Program-made: the position numbers and the translations under genes
Shown here: positions 36,291 to 64,000 of the stretch, one piece after another
Numbering within the stretch: position 1 is the first letter of the stretch
Layout of the letters: every line of letters begins with the position of its first letter
The notes under the pieces: model-generated
Told to the model about the DNA's origin: nothing
The model's input: only the letters and a program-made list of their open reading frames with translations
The model's database searches: none
Source of the DNA: Botryllus schlosseri
Lineage: Eukaryota
Length of the DNA: 64,000 bases
Reading direction: 5' to 3'
NCBI GenBank assembly: GCA_051294905.1
Contig: CM119372.1
Location: 4,216,001 to 4,280,000, forward strand

Positions 36291-39200
36291 TCAGATGTAT
36301 CTACCACTTGATAGAACAAATTCAGCAACAGCGGGCGATAAGGCTGGGTTAGACAACACGTGAAACAAAGTGAAATGAAGATTGAGCCTAGTACACTCGT
36401 CGCGCAGAAATCTGCGATAAAATTGATATTCCGGACATACAATAACAAAATGGTACACCGTTTCAGGTACGTGACAACGTTCACAAAGGGGGGACGGAAC
36501 ACAACCGATTTTAAATAGGTGACTCTTCAGCTTGCAGTGTCCAGTGCGGAGCCGGAACATGATGGAGTCGAATAGACGATTGGAGAGCATCGGCGCAGGC
36601 GCGAGGATTGATTCTCGGAACTGACGGTAGTGCGACCCGGTGTCCGAAGAACGGTATTGTTCTTGCCAGAGGTCAACACACAGGGATCTGATTAAGGCCT
36701 TGGCTTCAGGTAGCGAAACTGTCGCTGCATCGGTTGGAGGAGGACATAACGATGCCGTCCTAGCAAGTTCATCGGCTTGAGTATTACCCGAGATCCCACT
36801 GTGTCCTGGGATCCAAGCCAGAGTTACATGGAGGCGCAGATTGGTGATCTGAAGTAAGGATTCGAAAATATTTAGTAAAATAGCGTTGGTGCTGCACGGT
36901 AGCTGTGTTCGCGATACATTTGAAATAGATTTGAGGGCACCGAGACAATCTGACAGAATGATATACCGAGAGTGCGATGAGCCATGTTCTGTAATCCACT
37001 TCAAGGCATGAAGAATGGCGCTCAATTCGGCGGAATAACTGGAATATGCACTCGGTAACGCTTTGGATAATTGAACGGAGTGGGCGGGAATGAACAGGCC
37101 GTAGCCAACACCGTTCTCGGTCTTGGATCCGTCAGTGTACATCGTTAGGAAACCTGCGTATTTTTCAAAAATGAAATCCAGGCTATTAGATAAGATAACT
37201 GGTGGCGTGGAGCACTTCGATATAGTCTCGCAAAGTTCGAGATCGACGTTTAGACACGGCGCGGTCCATGGGGCGGGAAGAGAGGTTGGCTTGGTATGCA
37301 GTTTAACTGCTCGCAGTGAGGGTATCTGTGTGATTATATTAAATGTTCTGAAGTTGGGGTTTGTTAGATGATAAATCTCGTGCCAAGTTCCTTCTATGAG
37401 CTGTTCATGGTACGGAATCATCGATGGCACCGTTTGCAATTTACAACGGAGGTTGAGACATAGCTGGATATGACGAAGACTGAGCGGCATCTCATTACAA
37501 GCAGCTTGTAGCGCGCATATAGGTGAGCTTCGCATCGCCCCACAGCAGAGACGTAGTGCACGGTTCTGGATTGTTTGGACTTTCGCAAGGTGACACTTCG
37601 GGGCAAAGAAGTATGCTACCATCCCATACTCTATGACAGGACGTATCAATGCTCTATATAGCATCAAGAGGGATCTTTTACCAGCGCCCCATGCCGTCCC
37701 TGTAAGAGTTCGTATAAGGTTGAGTCGTTTGCTACATTTATCGACGATCTTGTCGATGTGGTATTTGTAGGACAATGTTTTGTCGAAAGTCACTCCTAAA
37801 TACCTCACCGTATTTTGCACTAAAATGGATTTACCTCCGAGATGCAAGGACACCTGGGGGAATTTTCGTTTGCGAGAGAATATCATGGCCACGGTCTTGG
37901 ATTCCGAAATAATGAAGCCCCACTTTTGGCACCAGTCGTGTATGGCGTTGAGGGATATTTGCACATTATCAGCGAGTGATGGGATAGACAATCCACTGTC
38001 CCAAACAGCAACATCGTCTGCATACATCGCATGGTCACATTTAATAATCTGTGGTAGATCATTAATCATAATCGAGAACAGAATCGGGCTAATCACACAA
38101 CCCTGGGGCAAGCCATTTTCAAGGGTATATTCTGCCGAAAGAGAGTTTCCAACTCTCACTTGAAACACCCGCTCCGTCAGAAAGTTTTCAATCCACAAAA
38201 GCATGTTACCTCGTATTCCCATCTGGGAAAGTTTATACAGCAAACCTTTTCTCCATACCATATCGTATGCACTCTGGAAATCGATGAAAACGGAAACAAC
38301 TGATCTCTGATTGTTGATCGCTTTGTAGGCGGTATCGTGGAGACGCAGAATGTGATCGAGAGTGCTCCGACGTTGACGAAAACCGGATTGACTGGGAGAT
38401 AATAGATTGTTCGATTCAACGTACCACTTCAACCTGTACACAATCATGGTTTCCATTATTTTACAAATGTGACTAGTTAATGAGATTGGCCTATACGACT
38501 TGGGTTGAGACTTAAGTTTTCCACTTTTCAGGATGGGGACGACAACTGATCGCTTCCAGGATTCGGGTATTTCACTTTTGTTCAACGATCTGTTGAACAA
38601 CGCAAGAAGATCAGTGAGCGAGTTCTGAGATAAATTTTTAAGCATTTGATAGCAAATTGAGTCACCGCCGGGAGACGATTTACCACGTGAAGCAATTGCG
38701 GACATCATTTCTTCCCGGCTGAAAGGGATATTAATTGGGTCCGCAGTAGAAGAGGAAAAAATAGGCTGAATCATGCTATCACACATTTGGTGCGACTGGA
38801 ATGCCTCTGTGTAGTGATTGGAGCTGCTGACATCACAAAAGAGTTTGCCGAATACATTAGCTTTTTCATAGTCGTCCGAAATAGTGATATTATTGTCAAC
38901 GATATGTGTGATTGCTCGAGATGCAGTTTGACCGGAGATTGACCTTACCACATTCCATACCTTTTTAAAACCCGAGTGCTCGTTCAAGGATGCACAGAAT
39001 TCCTCCCAGCATGTGCGTTTTGCTGCCAAGATCGTTTTTCGGCATTCTGCTCTCATCTTCTTGAACTGTACCACGTCTGCTGTGGAGAATGTCCGCTTCA
39101 TTTTCTGAAAAGCTGCTTTTTTACGACGGATTGCTCTTTGACACGTTGCAGTCCACCAAGGCACTGGGTTCTTTTCGGGGGTCTTCAGACGCGGTATTGT

Positions 39201-40004
39201 TTCCTCAGCAGAGACGAGCAGGAATTTTGTTATGGTTTCGTTCAAACTTTCGGCATTGACATCTCGAAGGTCATATGAGCATAGTTGGTCGTTCACAAGT
39301 CTCGAAAATGTAGGCCAGTCTGCTCTATTAAACATCCATCTTGGCGGTCTTGGTATTCTGCGAAGGATCCTGTCGTTGTAGGTGGTGAAGACGACAAGAT
39401 GATCGCTCCCAAGAAGTCGCTCTGATACCGTAGTCAGGCATTTTGCCGCAATATCTCTAGAGACCAGTGTTAAATCGATAAGGGACCAGCGATTCACTGC
39501 ATTAGTTGAGATGTTGAGTCTGGTAGGAGACCCTGAATTCAGTAACACCATGCTATGATGGTCCATAACATCATAAAGCAGCGTTCCGCGTTGGTTGTTC
39601 ATGTGGCTCCACGACGTATGGTGAGCGTTGAAATCACCGCATATAATGGCCCTTGACGATAAACTATCGAAAAACTGCAGGTCGCATCGATTCAACGTAC
39701 AGTCTGGGGGTATGTAGACATTACAGATGGTAATATTGCAAACCTTCACCGCGAGAACTTCGAGTTTGGATTGTTTTGTAAAAAGAAGACTTGATGAGAG
39801 AGTTTCAACGACGAAAATGCATAACCCACCCGAGTGAAGAGTTTTGTCTTGCCGATATATGGTATAGCCATGTATCCTAGGAGAGTACCTTTCAACAAGA
39901 TGCGTCTCCTGCAGAATTATAACGTCAGGTTTCGCTTCTAGCGTCGCGACATAGTGTTTGAGTTCATGCAATTTTCGATAGATACCGCGACAGTTCCATT
40001 GCAT
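36291..40004 (-). CDS. LINE ORF2: AP endonuclease - reverse transcriptase - RNase H - CCHC
   Basis: APE motifs QWNCRG, QETHL, GDFNAHH, SDH. RT motifs YRPISLTS, QSGFR, GLPQGCVISPILF, YADD, YLG. RNase H motifs YTDGSK, AEL, SDC, WIPGHSGISGNTQAD. C-terminal RLRTGH...CERC...ETVYHFVIVC. Confidence 0.96.
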   Translation of the reverse strand: MQWNCRGIYRKLHELKHYVATLEAKPDVIILQETHLVERYSPRIHGYTIYRQDKTLHSGGLCIFVVETLSSSLLFTKQSKLEVLAVKVCNITICNVYIPPDCTLNRCDLQFFDSLSSRAIICGDFNAHHTSWSHMNNQRGTLLYDVMDHHSMVLLNSGSPTRLNISTNAVNRWSLIDLTLVSRDIAAKCLTTVSERLLGSDHLVVFTTYNDRILRRIPRPPRWMFNRADWPTFSRLVNDQLCSYDLRDVNAESLNETITKFLLVSAEETIPRLKTPEKNPVPWWTATCQRAIRRKKAAFQKMKRTFSTADVVQFKKMRAECRKTILAAKRTCWEEFCASLNEHSGFKKVWNVVRSISGQTASRAITHIVDNNITISDDYEKANVFGKLFCDVSSSNHYTEAFQSHQMCDSMIQPIFSSSTADPINIPFSREEMMSAIASRGKSSPGGDSICYQMLKNLSQNSLTDLLALFNRSLNKSEIPESWKRSVVVPILKSGKLKSQPKSYRPISLTSHICKIMETMIVYRLKWYVESNNLLSPSQSGFRQRRSTLDHILRLHDTAYKAINNQRSVVSVFIDFQSAYDMVWRKGLLYKLSQMGIRGNMLLWIENFLTERVFQVRVGNSLSAEYTLENGLPQGCVISPILFSIMINDLPQIIKCDHAMYADDVAVWDSGLSIPSLADNVQISLNAIHDWCQKWGFIISESKTVAMIFSRKRKFPQVSLHLGGKSILVQNTVRYLGVTFDKTLSYKYHIDKIVDKCSKRLNLIRTLTGTAWGAGKRSLLMLYRALIRPVIEYGMVAYFFAPKCHLAKVQTIQNRALRLCCGAMRSSPICALQAACNEMPLSLRHIQLCLNLRCKLQTVPSMIPYHEQLIEGTWHEIYHLTNPNFRTFNIITQIPSLRAVKLHTKPTSLPAPWTAPCLNVDLELCETISKCSTPPVILSNSLDFIFEKYAGFLTMYTDGSKTENGVGYGLFIPAHSVQLSKALPSAYSSYSAELSAILHALKWITEHGSSHSRYIILSDCLGALKSISNVSRTQLPCSTNAILLNIFESLLQITNLRLHVTLAWIPGHSGISGNTQADELARTASLCPPPTDAATVSLPEAKALIRSLCVDLWQEQYRSSDTGSHYRQFRESILAPAPMLSNRLFDSIMFRLRTGHCKLKSHLFKIGCVPSPLCERCHVPETVYHFVIVCPEYQFYRRFLRDECTRLNLHFTLFHVLSNPALSPAVAEFVLSSGRYI

Positions 40005-40021
40005 CAGGTTCAGCGATTGGG

Positions 40022-41392
40022 TCAAGCTGAAGGCTGTTCTGATGCAGACAGAGCAGAGGACTGACAACGGTTGTTGCAAGTATCAGAGACTGATTTAAGG
40101 GTTGCACTCTCAACTGTGTACCCCAGGTATTTGGAGGAAACTTCCGCGACTAGGCTAAATACATTGCTATTCCCGTCTTTGCATGCTGTAACAGCAAGTT
40201 GTACGATTTCCGCAACAAGCGCTAGTAGGCGAATTGGATCGAGTTGTGCTATTGCTGCAGCTGTGCTATGGACTCGGACTGGGGGTTCTCGGGGTATGGG
40301 CTCATTATCGAAACGTTGGTTATTACGAGGCACGAAGTAGCGTAGGTCGGCGTCGTTGGGGGCTGGTGTCGTAATGCGCGATGTATTCCTTCTACCATGT
40401 CTAAGCGCTTGCGAGTACGCGAGGTCTCGGCTTGGAACGTTATTACTAGCGAGCTCTACATCTGGCGTAATCGGGCTAGGATTTTCGCGTAGTAGTAGGG
40501 TTTCTTTCGCCTCGGAGTAGGAAACCTGATTGCGTTCTTTAATTATTTGTATCCGCGCTTCTTCCTTGTATTTAGGGCAGCCTGCGTAAGCGGCACTATG
40601 CGGTTTGTTACAATTGAGACATTGTACTAAATTTTTACAGTCGCTGTGCTCATGATCTGATCCCCCACATTTGGTACAGCAATGTTTTCCACGGCATTTC
40701 GTCGCTGTATGGCCGAAACGGTTGCAGTTGTAGCATCTGGTCGGTGGCGGGTTGTACGGTCGGGTTGGGAATCGGAGATAGGCGAATGTTAGAAACCGGG
40801 GGACTGTAGTGCTAGTGAAATTCAAAAGAACTGATTGGCAAGGTTCAAAGCCTTCGTCTGTCTTCCTACGAAATCGTTTGACATAGGAAACCTTGTACTT
40901 TTGGAACCCGTCCAGCAACTCGTCATCTGATATCTCTATGGGCACGCCCCAGATCACAGCCCTAGATGTTGGGGGTTTGGGTAAGAAAACGGAGGCCTTA
41001 ATCGGGATGTTAGTCTTTGCGTGGGTGAGCGTATCGCATTCCAGGAGTTTCTTTACTTGCTTAGCGTTAACACAAGATATAAGCAGATCGCCAGAGTTAA
41101 GCATGCGAATGCTTTCCGAACTACCGACAAGGTGAAATATTGCACTGTTGACTGCGGTGGGGTGATATTGCCTTAACGGCCTATTTGTACCGGTCACCAA
41201 AACCTTTAAATTATTTCCATCGGAGCACAGCGCCCCACTAGCTACGTTTTCAGCACTGTTGGACGATGAAGGTGGCGCATAGTGTCTGGCAGGAATCTTA
41301 GCATCTGTACTGCAACTCTCATCGCTATCGCCAAGGTTCTCGTCTTCTGGTCGGACCCGCTTCCTTAGGGAAGTGTGATCCGACACCTCCAT
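40022..41392 (-). CDS. LINE ORF1 gag-like nucleic-acid-binding protein with three CCHC knuckles
   Basis: First ATG at 41392. Knuckles CYNCNRFGHTATKC, CTKCGGSDHEHSDC, CLNCNKPHSAAYAGC. Confidence 0.92.
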   Translation of the reverse strand: MEVSDHTSLRKRVRPEDENLGDSDESCSTDAKIPARHYAPPSSSNSAENVASGALCSDGNNLKVLVTGTNRPLRQYHPTAVNSAIFHLVGSSESIRMLNSGDLLISCVNAKQVKKLLECDTLTHAKTNIPIKASVFLPKPPTSRAVIWGVPIEISDDELLDGFQKYKVSYVKRFRRKTDEGFEPCQSVLLNFTSTTVPRFLTFAYLRFPTRPYNPPPTRCYNCNRFGHTATKCRGKHCCTKCGGSDHEHSDCKNLVQCLNCNKPHSAAYAGCPKYKEEARIQIIKERNQVSYSEAKETLLLRENPSPITPDVELASNNVPSRDLAYSQALRHGRRNTSRITTPAPNDADLRYFVPRNNQRFDNEPIPREPPVRVHSTAAAIAQLDPIRLLALVAEIVQLAVTACKDGNSNVFSLVAEVSSKYLGYTVESATLKSVSDTCNNRCQSSALSASEQPSA

Positions 41393-42119
41393 TTTAACAA
41401 CAAGGGAGCAATGTATCTGTCCCTTCACTTAATGCACTTATCTGGGTACAACAAGCTATAAGCAATTCCACGTAACGACTTTCTTCGGTATTCGAACGCT
41501 TTCGGCGACCAATTATCTACCTGTAGCAGAGACAATTACGAGCTCCGCACGCGGCGACGATCACTCGACGAATGATGGGCGATGGTTAGGCCACGCAGTT
41601 GAAAAAACACGTTTTTAAAACTTCACATGACTACAACGCCGTACTCTCTAACATGGGCGATGGGCAACGGGCATGGTTACCACAAAAGGAGTAATATTTT
41701 ATTAAAATAGTACAGACGGGCCCACAACAAGACATATCATGATCATAAACGTCATTTTATTTTGAACTATGAGCTGCGTACGATACCTGACGACGCTTTC
41801 CAGCAACTATAATGAATCGATATTGGGGCTATAGACAGACATGCTACTAGCTCAGGGCCGGGCAACATACGGCCCGCGACGGCATTTTGTCCGGCCCGCG
41901 GTCAGCTTCTCGTCTTACATGATAATGTGGCCCGCGGCCGATCAGACTGCCGAGATTCCCCACTACTTGCTTACTACGTCAAATTTTAGTGACTGTATGT
42001 TAATAGCCTATATTCGTGTGTGCGCACTTCGCAGCGTGCCAGAGTGGAGCTTACGGGTAAGTTCGTCGAAGCGAGAACACTTGCACTGTCAGCATTTACT
42101 GTGTACTTAACTCCAATGT

Positions 42120-45393: not shown

Positions 45394-48300
45394 TCAATGC
45401 TTCAAGGGGTCGAAGGCGTCCAGCGTGAAACTGCCCTCGGAAACGGCCAGGCCTGTGCCGAACGCGCTCTAAACAGGAACGTAACGTTAACGACGGTGTG
45501 ACGAGAAGATATGTTTTTTACCACGGGACGCGCCATCAATACGTTAACGCACGCAACTAGATAATTATAACTGTTTTATTAGAGCGAATTGTCGCTAATC
45601 TAATTCGTGAAATGTTTCTATATACTGTAATTTGGATTGGATAAAGAATTGAAACAATGATTCGCTCGTAAGGCTTATATTTTCGATACTCGATGGAACC
45701 GTTACAATTGACACCAGAATCGTATGCGAGCACCAGAATCGTTGGTTGGGTTCCAGATTAACAAAATATATGAAGTGCATTGTGACAACATACGCAGTAG
45801 ATGTAGTATAATGATGAGGGTCAAGACCAGAGTCCTATCGGTATCGTATGTTTGAGCTGATAGCTAGCAGATAACCCCGATATCATCGGCCGAGATTCAA
45901 AAGATTTTAGCCTCAAAGCAAGGCTGATTTCTAAAAGTTCATACGATATCTGTCGACATAACCCAAGTTATCGTAGGCCCAGGTTCAGAGCGTGTAAGCT
46001 ACAAGAAATAGATCAATATTCCCGGTCTAACAGCCTCAGATCATAATACCGATTCCCTACTTCCACATTGTGACGTCACGAGAATTGCCGGGATTTTTTT
46101 TTACCTGATACTGATATTTATTTCAAAGCGTGATGTCGACTCAATATTTTCGGAAAACCGATAAAAAGTGACTTTCATACAGTAAGAATACCAAGAATTG
46201 GCTACAGTGCAAAGATAATGCCGCAAGTCAGACCCAGAAAGGCCGCACGCGTTTCACGCCAACTCACAACAGCAAGTTGCCTCGTCTTCTCCGCAGAATC
46301 GCCGCCACCCTTACTAGGGGGCTGTCTTTTGCAGCGACCGCGCGGAAAATATTTCCCCCTCCATCTCGTACCGGCCGCGCCGCGCCTCTGCTTTTTATTT
46401 TTACGCGTTGGCGGGCGGGTGATCGCGGGAGCGTTCTTTTGACCGCGAATTGGCGACAGAGGGCAGCGAGAGATTTCCGGGTTCTGCGAAAGAGAGTCGA
46501 AGAGAAGAGGGAAAGGAGAGAGAAGCAGAATTGAGAATACAGACAGGCTGGTCCAGACTTCGACAACTAGATAATTTTAATTGTCTGATTAGATTAATGA
46601 AAGCGATAAGCCGATAATCTAATTCTAATCTTATTTGTGAAATATTTCTATGCCTTAATTTTAATTTTACTCCTATTTCCGTTTCTTCTGAAAATGATGC
46701 AGGAGAACTGTATATTGCATATCGAGCCGAGCTTTCTGAACAGACATTTGCCATTCTTGTGCTTATGACAATCAACTCAGATTTAATATGAACTGAACGT
46801 GACAGAGTGTCCACGCTTTCGCGAATTCAGCAGTTATAATTTGGTTTAATTTGACAAAACAAAACTGTGCAGCAATAATTCTAATTCTGATCTAATTTCG
46901 AAAAGTTGTCCGAGTGAGGGCGGGTCACCGTAAGAACTAAAAAGGATATAAAACTGGGACCGTGTCAAACTCAACTTGCGTCGCGGGCCGGATCATTCAA
47001 ATGATTCAAATTCCATGCCCTTGTTTTTTGCTTGAATACTCAATTATGAAGCCTACACAATAATATATTACATTATATAACGGATCATAGGGTTTTACTC
47101 TAGCAACGCCTTTATTCGGCGACAATGAAATCAGCAAAATTAAGTTGTAAGTAACGGTACGGTAATATAACTGCTAAAATAGTAGCCTTATGGGCGATAT
47201 GCGTTAGCATATTGCTACGATTGCTTTGCTTTAGTCGTAATCTGGCAACAGTCATGTGTATGCGCTATGAGGAATACGCGAGATTCGGGTTTCACCGTAT
47301 GCCGAGGAGCGTTAGTCATTAGCGAAATAGGAGTGCGTCCACAGATATTTGAATTATATTTTTGTATGACAATTATATTCTCCATGTAACTTGCATACAG
47401 CGGTCTCTAAGTATGTCGTTTTCACTTCTGCGAATAACTACTTTTTGGTCCGTTTTGAATTGAGTGTAAATGGCGGCTCTTTCTTGCCGATGGTGACTAA
47501 GAGTGAAACTACAACACCACTGTCGGATGGTTGTAACGTAGCCTGTGAACCTACTCGACACTTGCCGTCTTGAGGGATTATTTGATGCTAGTATTTCGCA
47601 CAGAATTCCAACATTTGTCGGAAAGGTGCTGGATGATATAGCCGTTTTTCAGAATCGCTTTGCGGGCCGGATGAAATCCTCTGGCGAGCCGTATGTTTGA
47701 CATCCCTGATATAAAAGGATAATGCCACGAGCAGATTTGGACGACGCGAAATCTAATTAGCAAAATTCTAATCAAATTTCCGGTTGTCGCAAAAATGCTA
47801 CCGAAAAAACTGTGCAGTGCGAAACGAGCCGTCAGCGATGTACAGACATTTGTCATGTTCACGCTTACGAGAACGGGGATCCGAGTTGACACGAGGTGAC
47901 CTTGGTTTTGCCGTATTGCTTTTTAACCTGGATTTCAATTCGATTTCCAAGTCGTTTCATTTGCGAATCCAGAAATTCTGATTCTAATCGAATTAAAAAA
48001 GACATCGGTAGCTATAATTCTAATTCTAATTCGGAAAAGCTGGAAGGTTTCATGTTTTTTCCGCTCTGGCAGGAAGAAGGAGATGAGAAGATAATAACCA
48101 ATGAAACAGAATCCCAAATATGAAGTTACACACTCCATGGTAGTGACGTCGCAAAAGAGAATGCGTTGGGCGCCGTGTCAGATTTTGAGTGACTGCGATA
48201 GGATTATTATCAAAAGGTACATATTTGAATTTTCCCTATTATTCATGCTAGTGTGATGTCATTATGAGTGATACTCGACTTTCCCGGGAATCAAACCGAA

Positions 48301-51300
48301 CCCGACACAGGTTTGAAGATTTTCCAATGAAATTACCCGGTGCACAGCACAGGATGAGGGTTTTTATGGAGTCGGTATTGAATATACATAAAGCAGATCG
48401 CGTCAGCGCGGAAACGGCATAATCACGATTACACTCCACACCGACCCCTGCATTTACACTGGATTCTGTATTGCGCAATGCGCGTATATGATCAATGTCA
48501 TCATATATGATCAATACGTCAGCCTGACGCAAACTGGTTTTTTCACGTTACTAATTGGAATAGCGGCTGCGTAATGTTTCCTTTACCGTGTTGTTGTTAT
48601 GGTGTTCATGATGTTTGGCGACTACCACGGTCATTAGGGGTGTTCAAAAATGACTTTTTTTCTCAAATCGTACTGGCTACTTGATAAAATTGTTAGGTTA
48701 CCTAATTTAAGCCTACTCACCAAATTTGGTTCAATTCCAGCCAGTAGCCGCATTGCTGTATGTAGGCTGACGTAATTCTACATGTGCAGTGTGCACTGCG
48801 CAGTATGTGGCAATAAACAAACACAATTAAGCTGCTTTCATGTCAGCAAACTGGTTACGCTACGGTCGGCTCATTTCTAGGGCCGGACACAACGATCAGC
48901 GCAATACTAGTCGGGCATCGATTGTAATTTGTACTCGAGTGGAATAGTGGAGTTTTCAGAGAAACAGAAGTATACGCCTTCATACCAAGAGCACTAATTC
49001 TACAGTTGAAGCCTCGAAGCCTCCGCTAGCCATATTTCATCAACGGAAAACTCGTTTGAACCCAATTATTGCTGCTGCTACGACGTCACAATAAGCGATA
49101 CTCGAATAATCCGAATCTAAGTACCATGTACTGCCGATTTTACCGCAGCCCTACGCATTTCGAGGTAGCGCAAATTTTCTCACCTGCATGTCCAGGATAT
49201 CTTTGGGGCTGACGCAGGAATGGGGCGCGGGCGCGAACGGTTCGGCGGGAAACGGATTCGCTGTAACGAAGACAACACAAATTCAAACAAAGAAGCAATA
49301 CGCGCGTGTAGGATTTCCGCATATACATACGGGTTACACTCGTGCTTAGGCTGTAATTGCGTGGATGAAAATCGGTGCATTTCCCTAATTTCCACCACAG
49401 CCCAGGGTGTAAAACAGGCTGGCAGAACCTTCGGTGCTAAATTTTGCTTCAACAGTCATTCCAATGAGGGAAAACTAATCAAATACACCAGTCCTACTCG
49501 TAAACGGAACCCACTCCACTCCTAGGATGCGTCTACATAAGTATTTTGGTATTTGAAACATGTTTAAGTTCATCCATTGAAGGGGTGTAAGAGGCAGACA
49601 TTGCACCCGAATGTGAGTTCGGAGAATACTGAGTTAGATACGGGTTTCGTTCACAGCATACCACCTACCTTGCATAGCGACTAGTCGGGTCCCTCTGGAA
49701 GGCGGTTGCGGTATCGTGGGCACAAAAGGCCGCATGTTGAATGGATCCTGAAAACGAAACAGCTATTAGACAAGCAGACACGCGCGTGTAAATCCGGCTG
49801 AAGCGACACGCGGGCAGAGAAAACAGTGTAGAACAGAACAGGAATACCCAAGATCAGAAAGAAGCGGAACAACTCCACAGTATAGTATAACCTGAGACTC
49901 CCAACCCCCAGAAACGCGTGACGTCTCGCAACCCGCGCTATCCAAAATATCGCTCTCCCGGCAATCTAGCAAGTTCAGCCGAAACTCCGCGGCGCCCGTC
50001 GTGTCAGGGCGCGGCGCAGGCTCCTTCTCGACACCGCCACGAAACGACGCCTTTTCAGTATCGAAAAGCGCGCCATTTTCACGAACGTTCCGATCTCGTA
50101 ACCGAGTTTGCTCTCCCGCCCTTGGTAATGAGATGGTCGGCGTTGTTTCGAAGATGGACTGCCTAGTTTTGTTCGTTTGATTTGATTTAAACTCATTGGC
50201 TTCTAAGTATCGACTAGACTTTACAGCTTTCGGCAAGGCTATAGAAGATACACAGTCAACACAAGAAGCATCTTTACTAGCTGCATGTCGAAAGGCCTCC
50301 ATCAACCTATTCACGTTATCGTACGTAGTGTCTACGGTGCTTTGATCGCGCCGCGGATAATCGCGCCCCGCGAGCATCATGTAACCATCTTCTCCACTCA
50401 GATGACGCAAAGTGGCGTCGATATTCGCGCCCCGCGTGCAGTCCCCGCTTTCGCGCAACACGTAAGAGTATTCTTTGGACGACGACCCGGACGTAACGCT
50501 GCTGCTGACGCTGGTCAGCTCGTCGCTTGAATCAGTCTGGTCGTAATACGCGCGCATTGCTTTCAAACTGTTATCAAACGGTATCCTCGTGTCTGCCTTA
50601 GATCTTTTCTTCAAAGAACCGCGCATTGTGACGTCACTGTCTTTTAACAGCTCGCTGGGGGAGTGCGCTTGATGATTAGCCCGCGGGTCTATCATCATTT
50701 TATGTAAAGTTGCGATCACGTCGTCCATACTGGCGTAAGTTCCAGCGCTTTCCGAAACGGCGGGGGATGAAAGGCGATCAAAGCACGCCGCTTCGCTTTG
50801 ATCATTTTTCGGTTTCTTTGTTGATAAACCGGGGAGAAGCGAGGATAGCACGTTTTTCAGCCTCTCTTCGCGCGGCGCCTTTGATCTCCTGTGCCGTTTC
50901 CCGCTTTTTCTGATTTTTTCGCCGGAATCCGTTTCCGGGACTGAAACGCGGTGCGTCTGATCTCCCGGAAGCGCGTTTCCGCGTGGAGGATGAGGAGGAA
51001 AGATGGAAGAAATCGAATGCAAAAGAGAAGGATTGATCTGGAAAGGATGAAAGGAAAAAAATCACAAGAAAATGTGAAAGACATTCAATATTCCCATGAG
51101 AAAGCGCGCGAAATTCTCCCGCGTCTCTATGACGTCGTGCACGACCGAGGAAAATCAAAGCGTTGTGTTATTCATCAAGATAAGATTTGTGTGTTACGCC
51201 AACCTAGTTTGTACCAACAGGAGTTTGTGTAGATCACGAAATAGTACACTGAGCCTAAGCCTATTCTGTTTCTGAGCTTAAGCTCTGTTGGCCTTAATTA

Positions 51301-54300
51301 TTTGAATCTCCATGTCCGCGAGTCATAATTGGTGATACGATCGTCTCTATTAGTTGCCGACTGCTACCTCTGACGTGTGTGAGCCTAAAATATTCGGGTT
51401 ATTTCAATGAGTATACTATTGAAGTTTAGATATGGACGTTGCGCGTGAGTCAAGCGCGCGTACGCACGCAATACACGAGGAAACACCTTGCATACCTATT
51501 CCACCAATAACTGTATCAATTTCAATGGCTAAATTGAGCATGGCAAATTTCAACTTCTTATCAGGCCCAAAATAATATGAAAGTCAGCTGTTAGGCCTAA
51601 TAACAGTTTTCACTCATTTCACAGAGGCGTTATAGCGATATACCCGGTGATCACCATTGGAAAGGATTTGTACGCGAGAACCAGCCTCGCCAGCCAGGTA
51701 TAGTCATCAGCTCCTAAATACGAATTTCCGTATCGCGATTGTGACATGACAGAACAAATTACAGCATAGAAATATTTGACAAATTAGATTACGATAGATT
51801 CAGATTGTCGGCATTTCACCCTTTAGTTAGTCAATTCCAAGTCAGGTCGAGAACCACTGCCTTCAACATAAAGTTACAACCTGGATTACATCACAGACGC
51901 ACACAATCGAGTTTCGCACGAAACAAGTAAACAGGAAACCGCTCCGTTTGTACCGCGCTGCAAAGGGTCAATCGCTCGAAATCCACCTCAACTACTTACG
52001 ATCATTTCCGGGCTAGTCACGTCCGTCGTTCGCGGGCTGGCACTCCGCGGCACAGCCACGCTGCCCGCGTCAAGATTGGCCGACCGCTCCGGGGTGGTCG
52101 ATGAGGCGAAAAGCTGGAACACAAAATCGGCTGAGACAAGTCGGCATGGCATCTAGGCTATACCGTGAACAAAATTCGTGTATTTCGTGGATTCCCGCAC
52201 CCAAGGAGACAGTTTATGGTGCCAAATCGTACTTTTAAATTCAAATCGCGCTTCCAAAGCCTATCAACGGGTGCAATACACCAATTTTTAAGGATCTTAT
52301 CTTGCGGATCATACGGTAAACCAGCGGTTTCCAAAGTGGGGGCTGCCCACAACTTGGGACCTGAGAGCGGTATGTTCTACGGATAAATTTTGGGAAAATT
52401 CGTTAATTTATAGCTCTCTCTGTGCGCTGAGTTTACCAACTAACCAAACAATCAATCAATGAACGAAGAGACTATTTATTCAGCGACACTTATTACGCGC
52501 TTATCGCTCCTAAGCGAAGTACACTTTCAGCGAAAAAAGTGTGTATTTCCACCCGTGTACCACCCCTGAAACGCGGGTGTGAATATATAATACACCCATG
52601 GCGCACGGAACCAGAGCCGACCTCAAACTTATACCGCGGTATAAATCGAGTAGAACATTTCAATCCAAATTATGCACGTGCACGTTGGCATGCACGATTT
52701 GTGACCGCGATATAATTCTGAGTTAGGTTCTCCCCTAGAAATCCACAAAAGGTGACACACGTACACAGAATCCACCACACCCTGGGATATATCTCTCTAA
52801 GGACTAGGTATTCGACTTATTTTCATCCATTGGAAGGGTGCGAACGCACAATTTTGTACCTGAAAGTTCCGTTTACCTGATTAGCACCCCAGGCTACGGT
52901 GAAAATCCGATGAAGACACATATTTCCGGCCCGTGCATTGGCAGTGCAGTGCAAGCTCGTGAAATACCTTGCTACAACACCGGAATCGACATAGGCCACG
53001 TCATAGATACGCGCCGGGTTTCAATCAATCAATTTCAGATTTTGATCACATCGATTGGAGGGAGATACATTATACATAACACGCATAAAACCACGTAACC
53101 CTCGGTCCGTAGAATGACATACCGCGAACTGCACAACTGTGCAGTGCATTGTTTGTGGTATGACTTCGTTACTCATTAATTTCATCTGGCTAATGTCCAA
53201 GTATGCAATCGAATCCACATCGGCGCGAGAATAATTTCGCGATAGCCGACGGATATCCAGACTATAGCCGAACGCAGTATGCAAAATAAGCAAGTTACAA
53301 TCAGGTGGCATTACACGTCAGGCTGCGTATTACATGCGGTGAAAATTGATAAGACCAGTAAAGGCCAAAATGTGATAAAATTGGCCGATATTAATTGAGC
53401 TCACTAGCGCGATCAATAAAATATGGCTTTGTTAGAAGGCTCGAGGCTGAGTCGCGGATAAAGATATTTTTTGTCCGTTTATGACAGAGTTAGGAAGCCT
53501 TTTTCGACATAGGAGCCATATTCACCCTTGGTTTTCGATTGTCAATGTCAATTCACTGTGCCGTCACAACTAACGATATGTGACGTCATGGCTAAAAAAA
53601 AAACAATAAAATACCTTTTTTAAACAAGGGCCATGCTCTAAACATGTTTGTTTTAAATGCAACCCTAGTAGTATATATGTACTTTAACGTGACTCATACC
53701 TGCGAAGACATTGGTGTCGTGTCCGCGCGTTCGTGCGCCGGTCGGCCGTTGGCGGCATTCTCCAACTCTGCTATTCTCTTTCGCAATTTATCATTTTCAC
53801 TTTCAAGTTCTTTGATACGTTTGCTCATGTCATTAACCTGTTCAAGAGAAGAATTTATATTTTGTCGAATTTATACCTAGACTTTTGGACAGTGTGGTCG
53901 CATTCGGCCAGACTGGGACTATCACATAATCATAGTTGTCTAATTTTGTTAATTAGAGCGAAATGCTGATAATTCAATTCTAATCTAATTGCTGAAATGT
54001 TGCTGAACTCAAATTCCAACCTAAATTTTGGTTTTGCAGACATTTGCAATTCACGTGTTCATGAACTGAACTTAATTTTAGTTGCATTTCCACCCAAATC
54101 GGAGTTTTACTAAATTACAAAGTTTTTGCGAATTCAGTATTTCTATTCTAACTTAAGTTGTGGAAAAAAACTGTGTAGCTGCAATTCTAATTCTAATATA
54201 ATTCTGGAAAGCTGAAATTTTCTAGATTGCCCAATTCTACAATGGGTGAGAAGAACATGAGATCTATCAATACATATTTTATTGTGGTGACTTTAATGGT

Positions 54301-57300
54301 TAAACAGAATCTGGTAAACGTCATAAAATACTGTTTTGGGCTGCAAGGAAACGCACGGCCCCAACAATTTTTAACCGGGGCAGCATGTACAATTAGACAG
54401 AACTAAAACTGTCACTGGCACACGTTTGATACTAGCACGAAGGCTATCTGTAGCTTCATCGGGAAAAAGTATACACGAGTCAAGTTTCAACATTTGTAAC
54501 GCACGAAGATACGTTAGTAATAAAACAACTATAGTAGAAAGCACCACGTTCGAAGACCATTTCACCTTTTTGCTACTCGGCGCTGAAGGATTCTTTTTCA
54601 TAAACTTCTCGTAAGCGATTTCGAAGGCCTGTCCTATCGTCAGTGTGATATCATTGGCCTGTAAATGCGCAATACTCTTCTCAATCGAGAACGATGAAAT
54701 CACGCATAGTATCCTAATCGAGTATCAGGAATCGGGCCTACTGCAGCATATTATTTCTCCCAATTTCGAGAAAGGACTCTGCTCATAAACAGCGACGGAA
54801 TATATCTTAGGAAGTGATGATTGTATCGATTGTAGTTTGTGAGCTAGGGTTGTTCAAAGACATCATTTTTCCGGATCCCGGGATTCACTGATCAAATTGT
54901 TAGGTTGCCTAAAAAAAACGCTGCACACCAAATTTGACTCGATTCCAAACGGTAGGCAGTGAACGCGTAGGAAGTTAAATAGTTTGAATTTATTATTCAA
55001 AAAAATTAAGAACTTTTTTTCGTCAAATTTTGCTGTCAACTCCATGAAATTGTTGACCTGTCTTCAAAAAACGATGCAAAACCAATTTGACGCGAGTCCA
55101 ACCCGTAGAAGCGAAGTGATTCGAGTTTCATTCGTAATTTTGGGATTACCCACCGTCAACGCTATTTTTGCAATTCCAAAATTTCCAACTGCAATAACTT
55201 CCCTTCTACCGGTTGGAAGTGAGAAAAAGTTGTCGTGCGTTGTTCTTTGAGACGACTCAACAATATCATGGGGTTGATAGAAAAAATTGAATTTTTAAAA
55301 TATTTTATAAAAATATTCAAAGTCCTGCACCTTGACATCTGCCAGTTGGATTTGGGACAAATTTGGTGTGAAACGTTTTTTAATCCAACATAATAACTTA
55401 ATCCGCGAATTCACGAAATCCAGAAATTTATTTGTTCTCAAATCGTACTAGTTACTTGATAAAATTGTTAGCTTACCTGATTTAAGCCTACACACTAAAT
55501 TTGGTTCAATTCCAGCAAGTAACCGAATTGCTACAGGAGAAGAAAGTTTCTATTTATTATCTAAAAATAAATAACAAAAAAATTGAAAATTATCTGTTCA
55601 CCCTATGAAAGTGTTAGGTTGTCTATAGAAACGATGTTCACCAAATTTGGTTCAATTCCAACCAGTGAAAGCGGAGTTATTGCCGTCGAAAAATTTGGAT
55701 TTCAATAAAATAGTATTTACGGTGGGCACAACTATAATAAATAACTGAAGAATTGGTCACCGTTAGTACTATTTTATTCATAATCCGAATTTTTCGACGT
55801 AATTGAACCAAATTTGGTGTTTAGGCGTAAATTAGGTAACCTAACATTTTTATCAAGTAGCAAGTGCGATTGGAGAAAAAAAGTCGTTTTTGAACACCTC
55901 TATCGTCCCTGGTAATGGAGTTTACTTCCACTCAAGTAGCGAGGCTGGCTACTTTGAATACCCGCGGTCTCTAAACAGTACCTGATGCACGGAGTCCAGT
56001 CCGTAACAGTAATGCTTGTTGTCGTCGAGCTTCGCTATAAAAGCGAACAGTCTCTTGTCGGTCTTGTCGTCCGCGCAAAACGAAACCCTGTGAAGCGCTA
56101 TGTCATGCCAAGTCTCCTGAAATGGCAAGATTACTCGCGGTTAGGTAAACACGGTCAGTACGCGCGAGCGTTTAGCGAGTGCAATGACTAAACAAGTTGA
56201 CACAACACCTAAAACAAAACGCGTTCTGTTACGCGTTGACAGGTGGGAATCTCATTCATACGCTCAATTATTTTCGTCCAGCTTTACGTCTCAAAAGTGA
56301 AAAGGAAGCCAACATTTGACGTAAGTCAGGGTTATTTTTCACCGAGTCGCACATCTATAGAATTTGCAGAGTTTTAAAATTAGATTATGAATTCGCGAAA
56401 ACTTCGAATAGGGATGAAATGAAACAACAACCGGTTCAAGTTCATGTCTCAAATCTTCTTTGTCACATGCATGAGAATATAAAATGGCTGTGCACCAAGC
56501 ATGGTTCGTTCCGCACTATAAGGTTCTCATGCAGCATTTCAGGAAAACCAGAAACTACGTTTGAATCAGAAATTAGAGCATTGAAACGTATCACAAATTA
56601 GATTATAATTAGATTAAAGGCATTTCGCTCGAATTAGTCTAATTAACTACTAGAATTATCTAAAATTATCTAGTTGGAAAGTCTGCCTTCAAGCACCCTT
56701 CCGTACTCCATTCCGAATTGCCTACATCTCTGAGCGTACGGTACTGCTATGAAATCCCGGCATATCTCTTACCGAAAGTGCATGTAAACTAGCGTTAACG
56801 TGACGACAAAAACTGATTTTGATACCATAGCCATGTCGTCTCAATAGCGCGAACAGATCGACCTCCGAACGGAGGTAATTGACACTCGGAGAAGTATCGG
56901 AAACGGCACCTAGCAAACGACCGGCGACGAACCCGATGTGGAGATTGGTATCAGCACAATGAACGGGAACATTCCACGGTAAGGCTTCAATTCAGTCTTT
57001 CTCGGTCAGTACACACCAGTAGCCTATTAAGGGTGCCTCAAAAACAGACTTTCACTTTGCATTGTTACGGAGTTTTTTCATTGTGATGCAGCAATGTCGT
57101 CAGGAATGAGCAGCCGCAACAATGGCAAAACGCTGGCGGTTTGCGCTGCTCTTTACTTGCTTCCAGACGGCATTGCTGCGACTGATTTTGGGGGTTCTAG
57201 GGCAACGACCACAATAAAATCTATATTTTCGTAATCAGCACCCCGGTAGCTTTCGATTGATACCAATTTCATCAAATTTCGCGCTCGGCAAGCCGGTCAA

Positions 57301-60300: not shown

Positions 60301-61303
60301 TGGTCCAATAAACGGGGTAGTTGTAGGCAGAGCTGGTAATCTAATTCTAATCTCAATTGCGAAATAAAATGATACCGTAAAACCGTATAGTGCGAAACGA
60401 GCCAAACTTGATGTACGGACATTTGCTATTCGATATAACGTAATTTTGTAAGATTTTGCAGATATTACGCCACAGATTACATCAGGATGCATCTGCTAAT
60501 TGGATGAGCACATGATGTTTGCGATTGCGCATGTTCTTTTCTATCCTATATGAGTACGTTTTTAGAGGAATCAGTTCGCCAATGCAACTGTCCTTATTTG
60601 TATTCGGTTTTTCCAATCATAGTCATTTCACAATTTTAGTGATTTGTACGATTTTTAGTGATTTTGATTGTTTGATTACTGTTTAATTATCAAAACCAAG
60701 CGCATGAATCATTCGCAATTCTGTGTCCAAGTGGTAGACTACGCTGCCTGTACCTTTGACATGACCCATGAACATATCCAGACCATCACTAATCACCACG
60801 CCATGCTTGTGATTAGTTGATTTATTTTCTGGACTGGGGGATTGAACCAAATTTGGTGTGTAGGCTTAAATTAGGTAACCTAACAATTTTATCAAGTAGC
60901 CAGTACGATTTGAGAAAAAAAAAGATTTTTGAAGACCCCTAATGCACAATCATATCGGAAAGCAGGCCAATGAAAGTCGGATTCGGATCTAACCATTAAA
61001 TTTAGCGATGCCATTTTAAGACAAGTCACTCTCAGCTGACGCTAAATAATAAACATCCAATGTCATTGCTAACAAATAGTGAACCCAGCGCGATATATAG
61101 TCAGTTACAAAAACACGCGGCCGACGACTTGCCTTCGTTTTAATATTGCTGATGGTGACGGAGTTGATATTAATGCTAAGCTCCACTTTGGGTGGTTTGG
61201 TCCCTTCCGTTCGTTTGATCTGCCGTGAAAAGTTCAATTTCTGCAGAGCCGCCTTCACCATTTCCATCCCTCTGGGCTCCGGAACTTCCGCCTTTCCGAG
61301 GAA
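45394..61303 (-). CDS. GULP1: GULP1/CED-6 PTB-domain engulfment adaptor (5' exon(s) not identified)
   Basis: Exons (minus): 61303-61133 ([12 protein letters not shown]...PKVELSI...KTK), 56116-55982 ([22 protein letters not shown]), 54658-54566 ([16 protein letters not shown]), 53837-53700 (coiled coil [21 protein letters not shown]), 52113-52000, [51037-49892 large cassette], 49747-49669 (DPFNMRPF), 49260-49184 (NPFPAEPF...ILDMQ), 45468-45394 ([11 protein letters not shown]). Phases are consistent. Confidence 0.9.
51340..51430 (+). mobile_element. Degenerate PLE terminal-repeat copy
   Basis: ctgacgtgtgtgagcctaaaatattcgggtt matches the hammerhead-bearing repeat, with core mutations. Confidence 0.65.
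55430..55900. mobile_element. TA-flanked MITE family (other pieces 48637-48775, 60841-60939, about 54880-54950)
   Basis: Shared ggggtgttcaaaaatgacttttttctcaaatcgtactggctacttgataaaattgttaggttacc in both orientations. Ends abut TA. Confidence 0.7.
59310..59767. mobile_element. Inverted pair of PLE terminal repeats with degenerate hammerheads
   Basis: Minus copy about 59505-59640, plus copy about 59640-59767, extra minus tail 59310-59370. Confidence 0.75.
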
Positions 61304-62569
61304 CTGTGAACGGAAAAAATAGATCATTCTAATTAGATTAGAGTAATTGGAGCCAGATGAGGTAATTTGATTGTAATTTAGTTTCTGAAATGTTTAACTA
61401 TGCTCTAATTTTTAATTCTAATATAATTTCTGGTTTTCATGATAATGCTACACAGCTGTATAGAGCGAAACGAGACAAGCTTGGTGTGCAGACATTTGCC
61501 ATTCTCGTGTTATATATGAGTCTGATTTAATATGAATTGAACTTGAGTTTTGTTGTGTTTTTTTTAAAATTCAGAATGTAAATCAATTTTGGAATTTTAG
61601 CGAATTCAGTAACTATAATTCAGTAGCTATAATTCTAAACCAAATCTAACTTGGAATTGCCGAAACATTTCTATGTGTCCAACCCTGATCCGCGGACATA
61701 TCAGTATGCAACACTCTAGCAAGCGACACGTGTTGAGCATGGGAATACACTAGCATGAGGTCACGTAATGAGCATGTGGGACTTGAGCATGGTGATATAA
61801 TACGAGCACGAGAAATTGAGCATGTGACACCAGATAATTGTACACTTGAGCAAGGATCGTGTTCTAAAGTGTCGCATGCTCATGTGTTCCCGAGCTATAA
61901 AGTCGTATCCCCATGCTCAACTGCCATATCGTCTTCCATTGTGTCACATGTTCCCCTGCAGGCTAGGTTAACGTGCGAGTCAGGGTAAAAGGTATTTTCC
62001 TTTCTAAATTTCACACTTTGTCTCCGTCAATTTAATGATCAGACGTCACAATAAAACAGAGCTGCGATGACGTTACCATAAAATATATTTTGAATCTACA
62101 AATTATTTGACACGTTGCAACTGCATGCGACTTACAGTCATGCGGATGTAGGCCTAAACAATGAAACGAAGTTTAAATAAGTGAATGGGTAATTATAGAT
62201 TATATTTACACATTTTACTACTACAAAAGGACGACAAAATATTACAATATCAATTTATTGTCATCCACCTATGTTTTTTGTATCCCACAGCCACAGGCCA
62301 CGCTAGGAGAGATCAGTGACGTGTTTTGTGAAGAAGCATATTATATTATGTATGAATGTATATAATACAATACAACCATGGTCGAAGAGAACGCAAGATC
62401 CCAAAAAAATTTAATGGGCATCGCAAATATTGCTCAAGAATTAAAAGTAGCAGGAAATACAAAAGGTTGGATGTAACTTGAGCAACAGTAACCATAGTGA
62501 AAATTATACGAGGAATGAAAATTAGAAAAATTTCCAAAACTCAGGATATCATTAAATATGCACTATGTA

Positions 62570-63889
62570 CAGGGGCGTATCCAGAGCGCGAAAAAGGGGG
62601 GGGGTTTGCGTTACGAATTTGACTATTATGACGTCATCAATGCGATCACTCGTCTTCACGCCATGGCGAATATCAACGATATACGATAATGTATAGTTTG
62701 ATAATAAAAAGAGATTTGCGGTGAGTGGGAGATGCACGAACACGATGCAGACATTGCCTGAAAATCGCGTTTTTTTATGGTATGATTAAAAGAAATTCGT
62801 AAATGCTCGCATTTAGTCATGAGCCGGCAAACGCCGCCCGTCTCCAAGCGCCTACTTCCGGCCAGAGATATGCGACTTTGTTAGGTTTTGACGACATTAT
62901 GCGCACGCCCGGTGGTATCGCAGCGGACGAACAAGCGCGGAATAGGGCGGTAGCATAAACGAGGGCGATCGCCAGAGGTGTGGTGTGAACAGTGTACGTC
63001 GTACACGAATGTGTGCTTTTCGATGGCTTTACCAGCCGTACGGCTGAGCGTGTAGTACGCGCGAAGAATAATTAGGCCTTAATTGCAAGCACGCAAGTCA
63101 GTCAATTATTACAGAGTACACACTGGGATAATGACTTGATCGACAGAGAAATTTGTCAGCCGATATAATTAGGTTAACTTTACTACTAGGCCTACTCAAT
63201 TCTCCCGTTCAGCGGCAACATAGGCCTGTATTTCAACTACAGCAAGCCACCTAACAATCGGGAACGTGGATTGCTAGGCTTGTATTTTGAATGTGACTGT
63301 CAATCGTAGGCCATTTCTCGCCGATAATCGCGAAGACAATGTGGATTTGAGAACAGCATTGTCGTACTGGTGCCGCCGTGTCTGCGTCTCGCTGATCAAT
63401 CAACACGCCGTGCAATTCTTAATTAGGATTTCAAGGCGAGCAGGTGCAGCGAATTCGTGGGCGCTGTTGATTGCCGACAACTTCGTCTTGGCAATTACGT
63501 ATCGCGTCGACCAATTAGATTAGATTTTCCAATAATGCGTCTCTCATTTTAGCAAGGCGAGAGAGAAATCGAGGGAAGAAAGTTGAGAACGTCTGCAACT
63601 GCCACAGCTGAAATGTAGCTGAACAAGGGCAGAATTCGTATGGAATTTGCGAAATATGATGACTTATTTTAACCTTTCGACTAATTCGGCGCATAATTCC
63701 AATATTTTGTAGGGGTTATAAACCCCCTAAATAACATTAGGACACCATATTCGCCTTCTCATATGAAAAAACGGATATGTTAAACTAATAAATTAGCAAA
63801 TATTAGTGGCTATATTTGACATCAATTTTTTGAATTTTGAAAAGGGGGGGGTTCCGACCCCCTAAAACCCCCCCCTGGATACGCCACTG
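62570..63889. mobile_element. hAT non-autonomous element (1320 bp)
   Basis: TIRs caggggcgtatccag / ctggatacgccactg. Perfect TSD ACTATGTA. Confidence 0.9.
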
Positions 63890-64000
63890 ACTATGTATAT
63901 AGCAATATGTCATTGCTGAATAATGAATAAGGGAACATCTTGAATTATGCACAAGTGGGTAATTTACTATCAATCGCTTGTATAGGTTGCAGTCTAGAAA

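Follow-up and report, generated by a model that had tools for sequence, protein, structure and literature searches.

Gene organization and the large internal exon

A stretch of 64,000 nucleotides of the Botryllus schlosseri genome (assembly GCA_051294905.1, contig CM119372.1, positions 4,216,001 to 4,280,000, referred to as the window) was analyzed for a gene on its minus strand which, judged by its sequence, is a member of the GULP/CED-6 family. Between the exons for the coiled coil and linker and those for the C-terminal tail lies a large internal coding exon at positions 49892 to 51037. A sequence-only reading had described it as a cassette exon with tyrosine motifs that could turn an engulfment adaptor into a phosphotyrosine scaffold. 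We estimate a probability of about 80% that this segment is a genuine coding exon of the GULP/CED-6 orthologue, that it is an ascidian-wide feature and that it encodes a disordered docking region. The assignment is based on its open frame, its single copy, homologous exons in other species and a spliced donor.

The exon (51037 to 49892, minus strand, 1146 nt) comprises 382 codons and is stop-free throughout. The enclosing open frame, positions 49769 to 51061, has 431 codons, and overruns the exon by 24 codons on the acceptor side and by 41 on the donor side. When the window was block-shuffled 200 times with local composition preserved, the longest stop-free stretch in any frame had a mean of 164 and a maximum of 241 codons, and a frame of 431 codons is therefore not attributable to chance. 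The acceptor, tgtgatttttttcctttcatcctttccag|ATC, with its polypyrimidine tract and AG at 51038 to 51066, contains 25 pyrimidine-rich nt ending in ttccag and sets the first exon base at 51037. The last exon base is 49892 and is followed by the donor CAG|gttata (gttata at 49886 to 49891), which run X1 joins to the next exon (see below). Upstream, the linker exon ends with ATGATC|gtaagt at 52000 in phase 0; downstream, after an intron of 144 nt, the DPF exon starts with ttttcag|GATCCATTC at 49747, also in phase 0. All four boundaries are in phase 0, and the frame is therefore kept by inclusion and by skipping alike. Length and phase (1146 nt, 0/0) are frame-preserving, as a cassette exon needs, and the Styela exon is alike in this respect. 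The acceptor, the donor, the open frame and the phase given by the sequence-only reading were all borne out, as was the position between the coiled-coil/linker region (linker 52113 to 52000) and the DPF/NPF tail (DPF exon 49747 to 49669).

The remaining exons of the host gene, all on the minus strand, were located by Pfam and Protein Data Bank (PDB) searches, by tblastn with the Styela clava protein and by joints in RNA data. The latter comprised run X1 (Logan contigs, taken as RNA by guess) and the raw RNA runs X13, X16 and X17. Three exons were matched by Pfam PID/PF00640 and encode the PTB domain: the first PTB-domain exon located in the window at 61133 to 61303, a middle one at 55982 to 56116 (Pfam E 1.3e-5) and the last one at 54566 to 54658 (79% identity to Styela by tblastn, with an X1 joint). 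When the first and middle exons were searched in the PDB, the human GULP1 PTB structure 6ITU was the sole match (E 4.4e-12 and 1.2e-12). For the Styela orthologue, 6ITU was matched at 1.4e-43 and the next PTB family at 7e-16; the window PTB exons are 73-86% identical to Styela. The coiled-coil exon, at 53700 to 53837, was found with the Styela protein and aligns with the Styela coiled coil; its Pfam matches were all sub-threshold and of coiled-coil type, and an X1 joint of depth 29.8 connects it to the last PTB exon. The gene has two features of the GULP/CED-6 family, a Dab-like PTB domain nearest to that of GULP1 and a coiled coil directly after it. The 38-codon linker exon (52000 to 52113, ending SPEMI|gtaagt) is joined to the coiled-coil exon by two X13 reads and by X1 contigs. 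In the tail, the DPF exon (49669 to 49747) has X1 joints to the large-exon donor and to the NPF exon and aligns with Styela DIFNMQPFVP. The NPF exon (49184 to 49260, ANPFPAEPF...) is linked to it by the X1 joint 49260/49669 at depth 22. The last coding exon (45394 to 45468) ends in FDPLKH and a stop; it was found by tblastn with the Styela protein and by an X1 loose end at 49184, the reverse complement of which matches the start of this exon (45468 to 45394). At the sequence level, the motifs DPF, NPF and LDAFDPL are present in these three exons, respectively. AP-2 binding has been reported for Ced-6/GULP (PMC3338440).

Without the insert, the located exons sum to 293 codons; with ~27 N-terminal codons, a protein of ~320 aa is obtained, and of ~700 aa with the insert. 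The first coding exon (~27 codons, ...KQWIHP...) was not found in window positions 61300 to 64000. Compared with vertebrate GULP1, CED-6 and Drosophila Ced-6, the N-terminal Dab-like PTB domain, the coiled coil, the DPF/NPF/F-D-P tail and their order are the same; the difference is the 382-codon exon (450-606 codons in relatives) between the coiled-coil/linker region and DPF. The donor of the first PTB exon, AAG|gcaagt (61127 to 61132, minus strand), points to an apparent non-canonical GC-AG intron, predicted from sequence.

In run X1, depth was 0 in the intron bins 51188-51784, 52183-52580 and 52780-53575, and four joints with GT..AG ends were found at predicted exon borders of the gene. Because three intron bins were empty and four such joints were present, X1 behaves as spliced RNA. 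One contig (depth 2.8, side 25, CT..AC ends) contains the joint 49746/49891, which links the large exon, at its predicted donor, to the DPF exon. Further X1 contigs lie inside the large exon at 49891-49994, 50125-50416 and 50786-51100. Exon words were detected in six RNA-like runs from four studies with shares of 0.06-0.29, above those of a 2.6-kb stretch including introns. Of the junctions proposed in the sequence-only reading, 49892>49747 was thus seen in X1, and neither 52000>51037 nor the skip 52000>49747 was seen at the thin coverage available. The linker exon also showed a second form. An X1 contig at 51880-52073 (depth 18.8, about equal to the spliced form) reads through the 52000 donor on the minus strand, and one or two X13 reads also cover the intron from 52000 to a donor-like site, CAG|gttgta, at 51881. 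Read-through at 52000 meets a stop after three codons (...EMI-V-S-S-stop). Such a transcript would either encode a shortened GULP, lacking the insert and the DPF/NPF tail, or be subject to decay.

Homologous exons and conserved motifs in ascidians

A phmmer search with the exon against 1.8 billion cluster representatives matched four proteins. One is Styela clava XP_039266394 (LOC120341888 isoform X1, "uncharacterized protein", 995 aa), which contains the PTB domain, the coiled coil, the insert and a DIFNMQPFVP tail. In the other three (P0001, P0003 and P0004), which come from unassembled contigs, this frame was called as a protein by itself. The PTB half of the Styela protein was searched against proteins of 547-1741 aa; at E<=1e-10 for a GULP-type PTB domain, the matches were LOC100182079 of Ciona intestinalis (873 aa), a closely related sequence (848 aa) and a PID-domain protein of Clavelina lepadiformis (757 aa), all of them ascidian. 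The CED-6 proteins of Drosophila and C. elegans (~517 and ~492 aa) are below this size range and so outside the comparison. When the insert profile was aligned with Ciona and Clavelina by hhalign, the core block gave a probability of 96.9 and an E value of 1.5e-10. Among the matches listed in a protein-homologue search, the insert profile found P0004, and the Styela insert region found itself and P0004.

The gene structures of the relatives are alike. At the Styela locus a single exon of 1818 nt, or 606 codons, encodes the insert (acceptor cctacag|CAC, donor GAG|gttctt, phase 0/0). The exon before it has 39 codons and ends in EAI (ATC|gtaagt, as in the window); the next one, the DIF exon, starts with tttctag|GACATATTC. 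At the Ciona locus one large exon with a phase-0 acceptor encodes residues 199 to ~652 (~450 codons); its donor, after ...HW, is probably in phase 0 as read from the sister sequence P0012. An ascidian contig (L002) has the same exon order, in which the linker end EMI is followed by gt, the large frame of 610 codons ends in Q followed by gt, and an exon with DAFNMQPF comes next. Position, single-exon nature and phase of the insert are thus conserved across the window, Styela, Ciona (donor phase as read above) and this contig. The insert is present in all three Styela clava RefSeq isoforms and in the sole Ciona model. The orthologues of Styela, Ciona and Clavelina share with the window the large exon at the same position and the core GE.GYM.L ... 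VD..YD.V. They differ in exon length (606 codons in Styela and ~450 in Ciona vs 382 here), and overall identity is just 20-35%. The Ciona gene differs further in having no separate linker exon, and the window insert is without the N-terminal D-x-x-Y-x-[ST]-[IV] block of Styela, P0001, P0003 and P0004.

As far as these searches reach, no counterpart of the insert was detected outside ascidians, and a literature search found no paper on ascidian GULP or on the large exon. The statement that no such exon is known in vertebrate GULP1 or CED-6 therefore stands for those proteins; it does not extend to ascidians, where existing models named "uncharacterized protein" already hold homologous exons. 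By sequence comparison, the exon is an ascidian-wide feature of the GULP gene and not a single-species oddity. Styela clava isoform X3 (P0005, 832 aa) starts at the coiled coil (MSKRIQDLE...) and lacks the PTB domain, with insert and tail kept. Going by this model, the insert may also be produced without the receptor-binding domain.

AlphaFold2, run with a shallow alignment, predicted the insert to be largely disordered, with a mean predicted local distance difference test score (pLDDT) of 47.5 and helices only at residues 104-116, 206-213 and 238-261, the last with pLDDT 81-93. Against the three Styela-like relatives, 44 of the 382 residues are invariant, and tyrosine is the most conserved residue type (4/9, hypergeometric p = 0.013). 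With Ciona and Clavelina added (seven sequences), 17 columns remain invariant: T110, S176, S187, L210, G215, E216, G218, Y219, M220, L222, V235, D236, Y239, D240, V242, M246 and R250. They cluster in the core GE.GYM.L ... VD..YD.V...M...R. This ascidian-wide core (residues 205-256, positions 50270 to 50425, minus strand), as defined by hhalign, the seven-sequence alignment A3 and the predicted helices, reads N-I-D-x-T-L-x-x-L-S-G-E-x-G-Y219-M-x-L ... V-D-x-x-Y239-D-N-V-x-x-L-M-E-A-x-R. Three further elements lie upstream on the same strand. Residues 95-116 (50690 to 50755) form a conserved block, S-x-x-G-T-Y101, followed by the amphipathic helix predicted at 104-116; in the five-sequence alignment A2, S95, Y101, D105, D106, T110, L111 and M114 are invariant. 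Residues 172-196 (50450 to 50524) form a Ser-rich acidic block ending in E-Y-S-Y192-V-L in both alignments. A basic cluster at residues 41-53 (50879 to 50917) is seen in the sequence and occurs at the aligned place in every homologue. The pattern is that of a disordered, fast-evolving linker with short linear motifs, as far as alignment and structure prediction indicate.

Within the exon, X1 differs from the window at 17 sites, of which 15 are non-synonymous and 2 synonymous; every one of the 17 falls outside the conserved blocks. Seven of these differences, each amino acid-changing, lie within 47 nt at 50167-50213 (residues 275-291), and at window position 49712 three X1 alleles were found. 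The polymorphism at these places points to pooled or chimeric individuals and to a hypervariable stretch.

The basic cluster and the tyrosine motifs YASM, YSYV, YMML and YDNV named in the sequence-only reading were all found in the exon translation. Y219 (in YMML) and Y239 (in YDNV) are invariant in the seven sequences and never replaced by Phe; within the stolidobranch-like set, Y101 and Y192 do not vary either. Of the motifs, only GYM.L and YD[NS]V are ascidian-wide, and Y101 and Y192 are replaced by Phe in some species. In YSYV the conserved residue is the second tyrosine (Y-x-L). Acidic residues precede Y219 and Y239, Asn stands at +2 of Y239 in 6 of the 7 sequences, and the contexts of both tyrosines look typical of kinase/SH2 sites. 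YDNV fits the pY-x-N recognition class of Grb2. D-G-Y-M-x-L is reminiscent of D-G-Y-M-P-M sites in IRS-1 and of Y-V-N-V in Shc.

Some motif assignments were rejected. YASM as a conserved p85-type YxxM site was discarded, as the relatives have YANL, YSNI and YASV, and YASM occurs in this species only. An ITAM formed by YMML...YDNV was excluded by spacing, which is 16 here, ~18 in Ciona and ~30 in Styela compared with 6-12 in ITAMs, and which is not conserved. LNLLD does not fit the clathrin box consensus L-hydrophobic-x-hydrophobic-[DE]. No NPxY or NPxF that could serve as a self-ligand for the PTB domain is present in the insert.

Proposed function and alternative explanations

The PTB half of GULP binds NPxY receptor tails and dimerizes, and the tail carries AP-2/EH-type endocytic motifs. 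The exon places ~380-600 predicted-disordered residues with a constrained ~50-residue core between the receptor-binding, dimerizing half and the endocytic tail. The constrained elements of this region are a basic cluster, an acidic run rich in Ser, three predicted amphipathic helices, all short, and two invariant tyrosines (GE.GYM.L and VD..YD[NS]V). We infer that the insert acts as a docking region, which would bring further partners to receptor-bound GULP via its conserved motifs. Phosphorylation of Y219 and Y239 would be the likeliest switch, because YDNV has the form of a Grb2-type pY-x-N site. As in docking adaptors, conserved tyrosine motifs were found in predicted disorder next to a PTB domain. 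Dab1, Shc, IRS, Dok and FRS2 are alike in that a PTB domain is followed by a predicted-disordered region with conserved tyrosine motifs, which is a functional analogy only; they differ in that the insert is not homologous to their regions and that the PTB domain is GULP-type, not Shc- or IRS-type. The Tyr-rich regions after the PTB domains of Dab1 and Shc, in particular, resemble the role proposed for the insert.

Other origins of the frame were weighed. It could belong to an independent nested gene or be a domesticated or decaying transposable element ORF inside a GULP intron. This would fit the overrun of the frame at both exon ends, the stand-alone calling of P0001, P0003 and P0004 in three relatives (from unassembled contigs, as said) and the presence of an intact long interspersed nuclear element (LINE) ~4-9 kb beyond the 3' end of the GULP gene. 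However, neither multiple copies nor transposable element domains nor a transcript of its own were found: the translated exon matches itself alone in the 495-Mb assembly, and a Pfam search of the exon gave no domain and thus no reverse transcriptase, transposase or other transposable element domain. The exon lies on the same strand as both flanking exons and in frame with them; RNA-like contigs show it joined to the DPF exon by splicing, and in the Styela and Ciona RefSeq models it is part of the GULP frame. A nested gene or transposable element, which the sequence-only reading had itself raised, is contradicted by the single copy, the lack of a domain and the in-frame splicing into GULP, and we consider it exceedingly improbable. 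In related searches, the ESM Atlas returned no usable match for the whole exon or for core residues 200-262 (best score 0.82, within the range of shuffled sequences), and a PDB profile search with the seven-sequence alignment returned one insignificant match only (E 0.076). A neutral, recently exonized intron segment without function is hardly more probable. The excess of non-synonymous differences (15/17) and a divergence of 2.4-4% in parts of the exon, like that of adjacent introns (~3%), would agree with it, but at least five ascidian lineages, Styela, Ciona and Clavelina among them, have kept open frames of 382-606 codons, and the 17 invariant residues and the core hhalign E value stand against it as well. 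Regulated splicing is a different matter, since a cassette exon is compatible with the preferred reading and differs from it on regulation alone: tissue- or stage-specific skipping would give a ~320-aa vertebrate-like GULP and inclusion the ~700-aa scaffold. Skipping would be frame-neutral given phase 0/0 in the window, Styela and Ciona (donor per P0012), and the summed X1 contig depth was 1.5-9.6 on the exon compared with 17-42 on the flanking exons. In addition, one contig (depth 16.2) aligns over 52073-51999, and the 16 letters that come next lie elsewhere. The match to 51999 needs a G, which fits GATCC of the DPF exon and not ATC of the insert, and the contig for this reason hints at the DPF junction; it is a hint of skipping and no demonstration. 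On the other side, expression can be judged only poorly from contig word depth, and other haplotypes of this polymorphic exon (2.4-4%) may miss the 95% threshold. The X1 joints contain no skip junction, and a skipping isoform was found neither among the Styela or Ciona models nor in X1, where thin coverage makes this an absence of evidence. The designation "cassette" was thus not upheld, as no 52000>49747 joint was seen and all Styela and Ciona models include the exon. The exon seems to be included by default, and we put regulated skipping at somewhat less than an even chance.

Several observations weigh against the preferred reading. On the RNA side, the raw runs X13, X16 and X17 yielded 8, 0 and 1 reads across 5951 bases, which does not allow junctions to be counted; the acceptor junction 52000>51037 was absent from X1 contigs and raw runs at this coverage; the X1 contig 50786-51100 (depth 3.8) crosses the acceptor unspliced; and in another, 49722-49920 (depth 4.4), the 144-nt intron downstream of the donor is still present. 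Little constraint acts on much of the exon, as the ratio of 15:2 illustrates. Phe takes the place of Y101 in both Ciona sequences and of Y192 in Clavelina, where, in addition, Ser stands at N241 (YDNV to YDSV). These replacements make a strict phosphotyrosine reading of the sites concerned less convincing, and Y101 and Y239, which flank predicted helices, could be structural contacts of helical binding motifs. A phosphotyrosine-independent role was accordingly weighed, in which amphipathic helices, Yxx-hydrophobic endocytic signals or Ser/Thr "dephosphin"-type stretches tune a clathrin-coat adaptor. The replacements by Phe speak for it, as do the coincidence of the conserved blocks with the three predicted helices, the fit of all four motifs to a generic Y-x-x-[MLV] and the invariance of S176 and S187 in the acidic Ser run. 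Drosophila Ced-6 is a clathrin adaptor that goes through phosphorylation-dephosphorylation cycles, as a calyculin A gel shift showed (PMC3338440), which was counted in its favor. Draper engulfment signaling, in turn, requires tyrosine kinases, and such inputs have been suggested to alter Ced-6 activity (PMC3338440). That Y219 and Y239 are never Phe in the seven sequences and have kinase/SH2-typical contexts stands against a role without phosphotyrosine. From the motif sequences, phosphotyrosine-dependent recruitment would be the single likeliest mode, at odds of roughly one in three at best; the phosphotyrosine-independent role is about equally likely, and both are held tentatively.

In its most specific form, the preferred docking reading would make ascidian GULP a Dab1/Shc-like scaffold. 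With the PTB domain docked on a CED-1/MEGF10/LRP-type receptor with NPxY, a Src/Syk-type kinase would act on GYM.L and YDNV, and Grb2-like/SH2 proteins would be recruited to the phagocytic cup, with dosage set by splicing. The splicing routes would be exon skipping, the PTB-less isoform (as in Styela X3) and the stop-containing extension at 51881. We regard this full scheme as speculative and, taken as a whole, rather unlikely.

How GULP/CED-6 relays signals from CED-1/Draper/MEGF10-type receptors is poorly understood, and apart from a PTB domain, a zipper and endocytic motifs the known protein contains little. Two invariant tyrosine motifs in an ascidian-wide insert offer a concrete handle on GULP signaling; Ciona and Styela are open to manipulation, and colonial ascidians clear cells massively. 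The exon is already inside public RefSeq/ENA models of Styela, Ciona and Clavelina. Its presence accounts for the label "uncharacterized protein" on the ascidian orthologues, which can be reannotated as GULP orthologues carrying a putative docking exon specific to the lineage. Disordered insertions confined to one lineage are common, and if the exon is constitutive and phosphorylation-independent, it would be an ordinary one of this kind.

Neighboring features of the window

A candidate alternative C-terminal exon of the GULP gene lies at ~46300-46440 on the minus strand. It is homologous to a 70-residue basic cassette (KWSKKYFPSGKKKRY) that separates the Styela isoforms X1 and X2, and this cassette is also present in contig L002 at 5209-5451. 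In run X1 a direct joint leads from the NPF exon (49184) to the last exon (45468), and the ~46300-46440 exon is thus skipped there. A HAND-like basic helix-loop-helix (bHLH) gene is convergent to GULP, at 25955-26179 of the window (plus strand) and at 10114-10620 of L002; the bHLH region is 79% identical. Because this gene is convergent in both, the GULP neighborhood is conserved. Between GULP and the HAND-like gene, an apparently intact non-LTR (long terminal repeat) retrotransposon occupies 36291 to 41428 on the minus strand. Its ORF of 1262 codons encodes an endonuclease, a reverse transcriptase (RVT_1, Pfam E 1e-41) and an RNase H, and is preceded by an ORF of 468 codons with no Pfam match.

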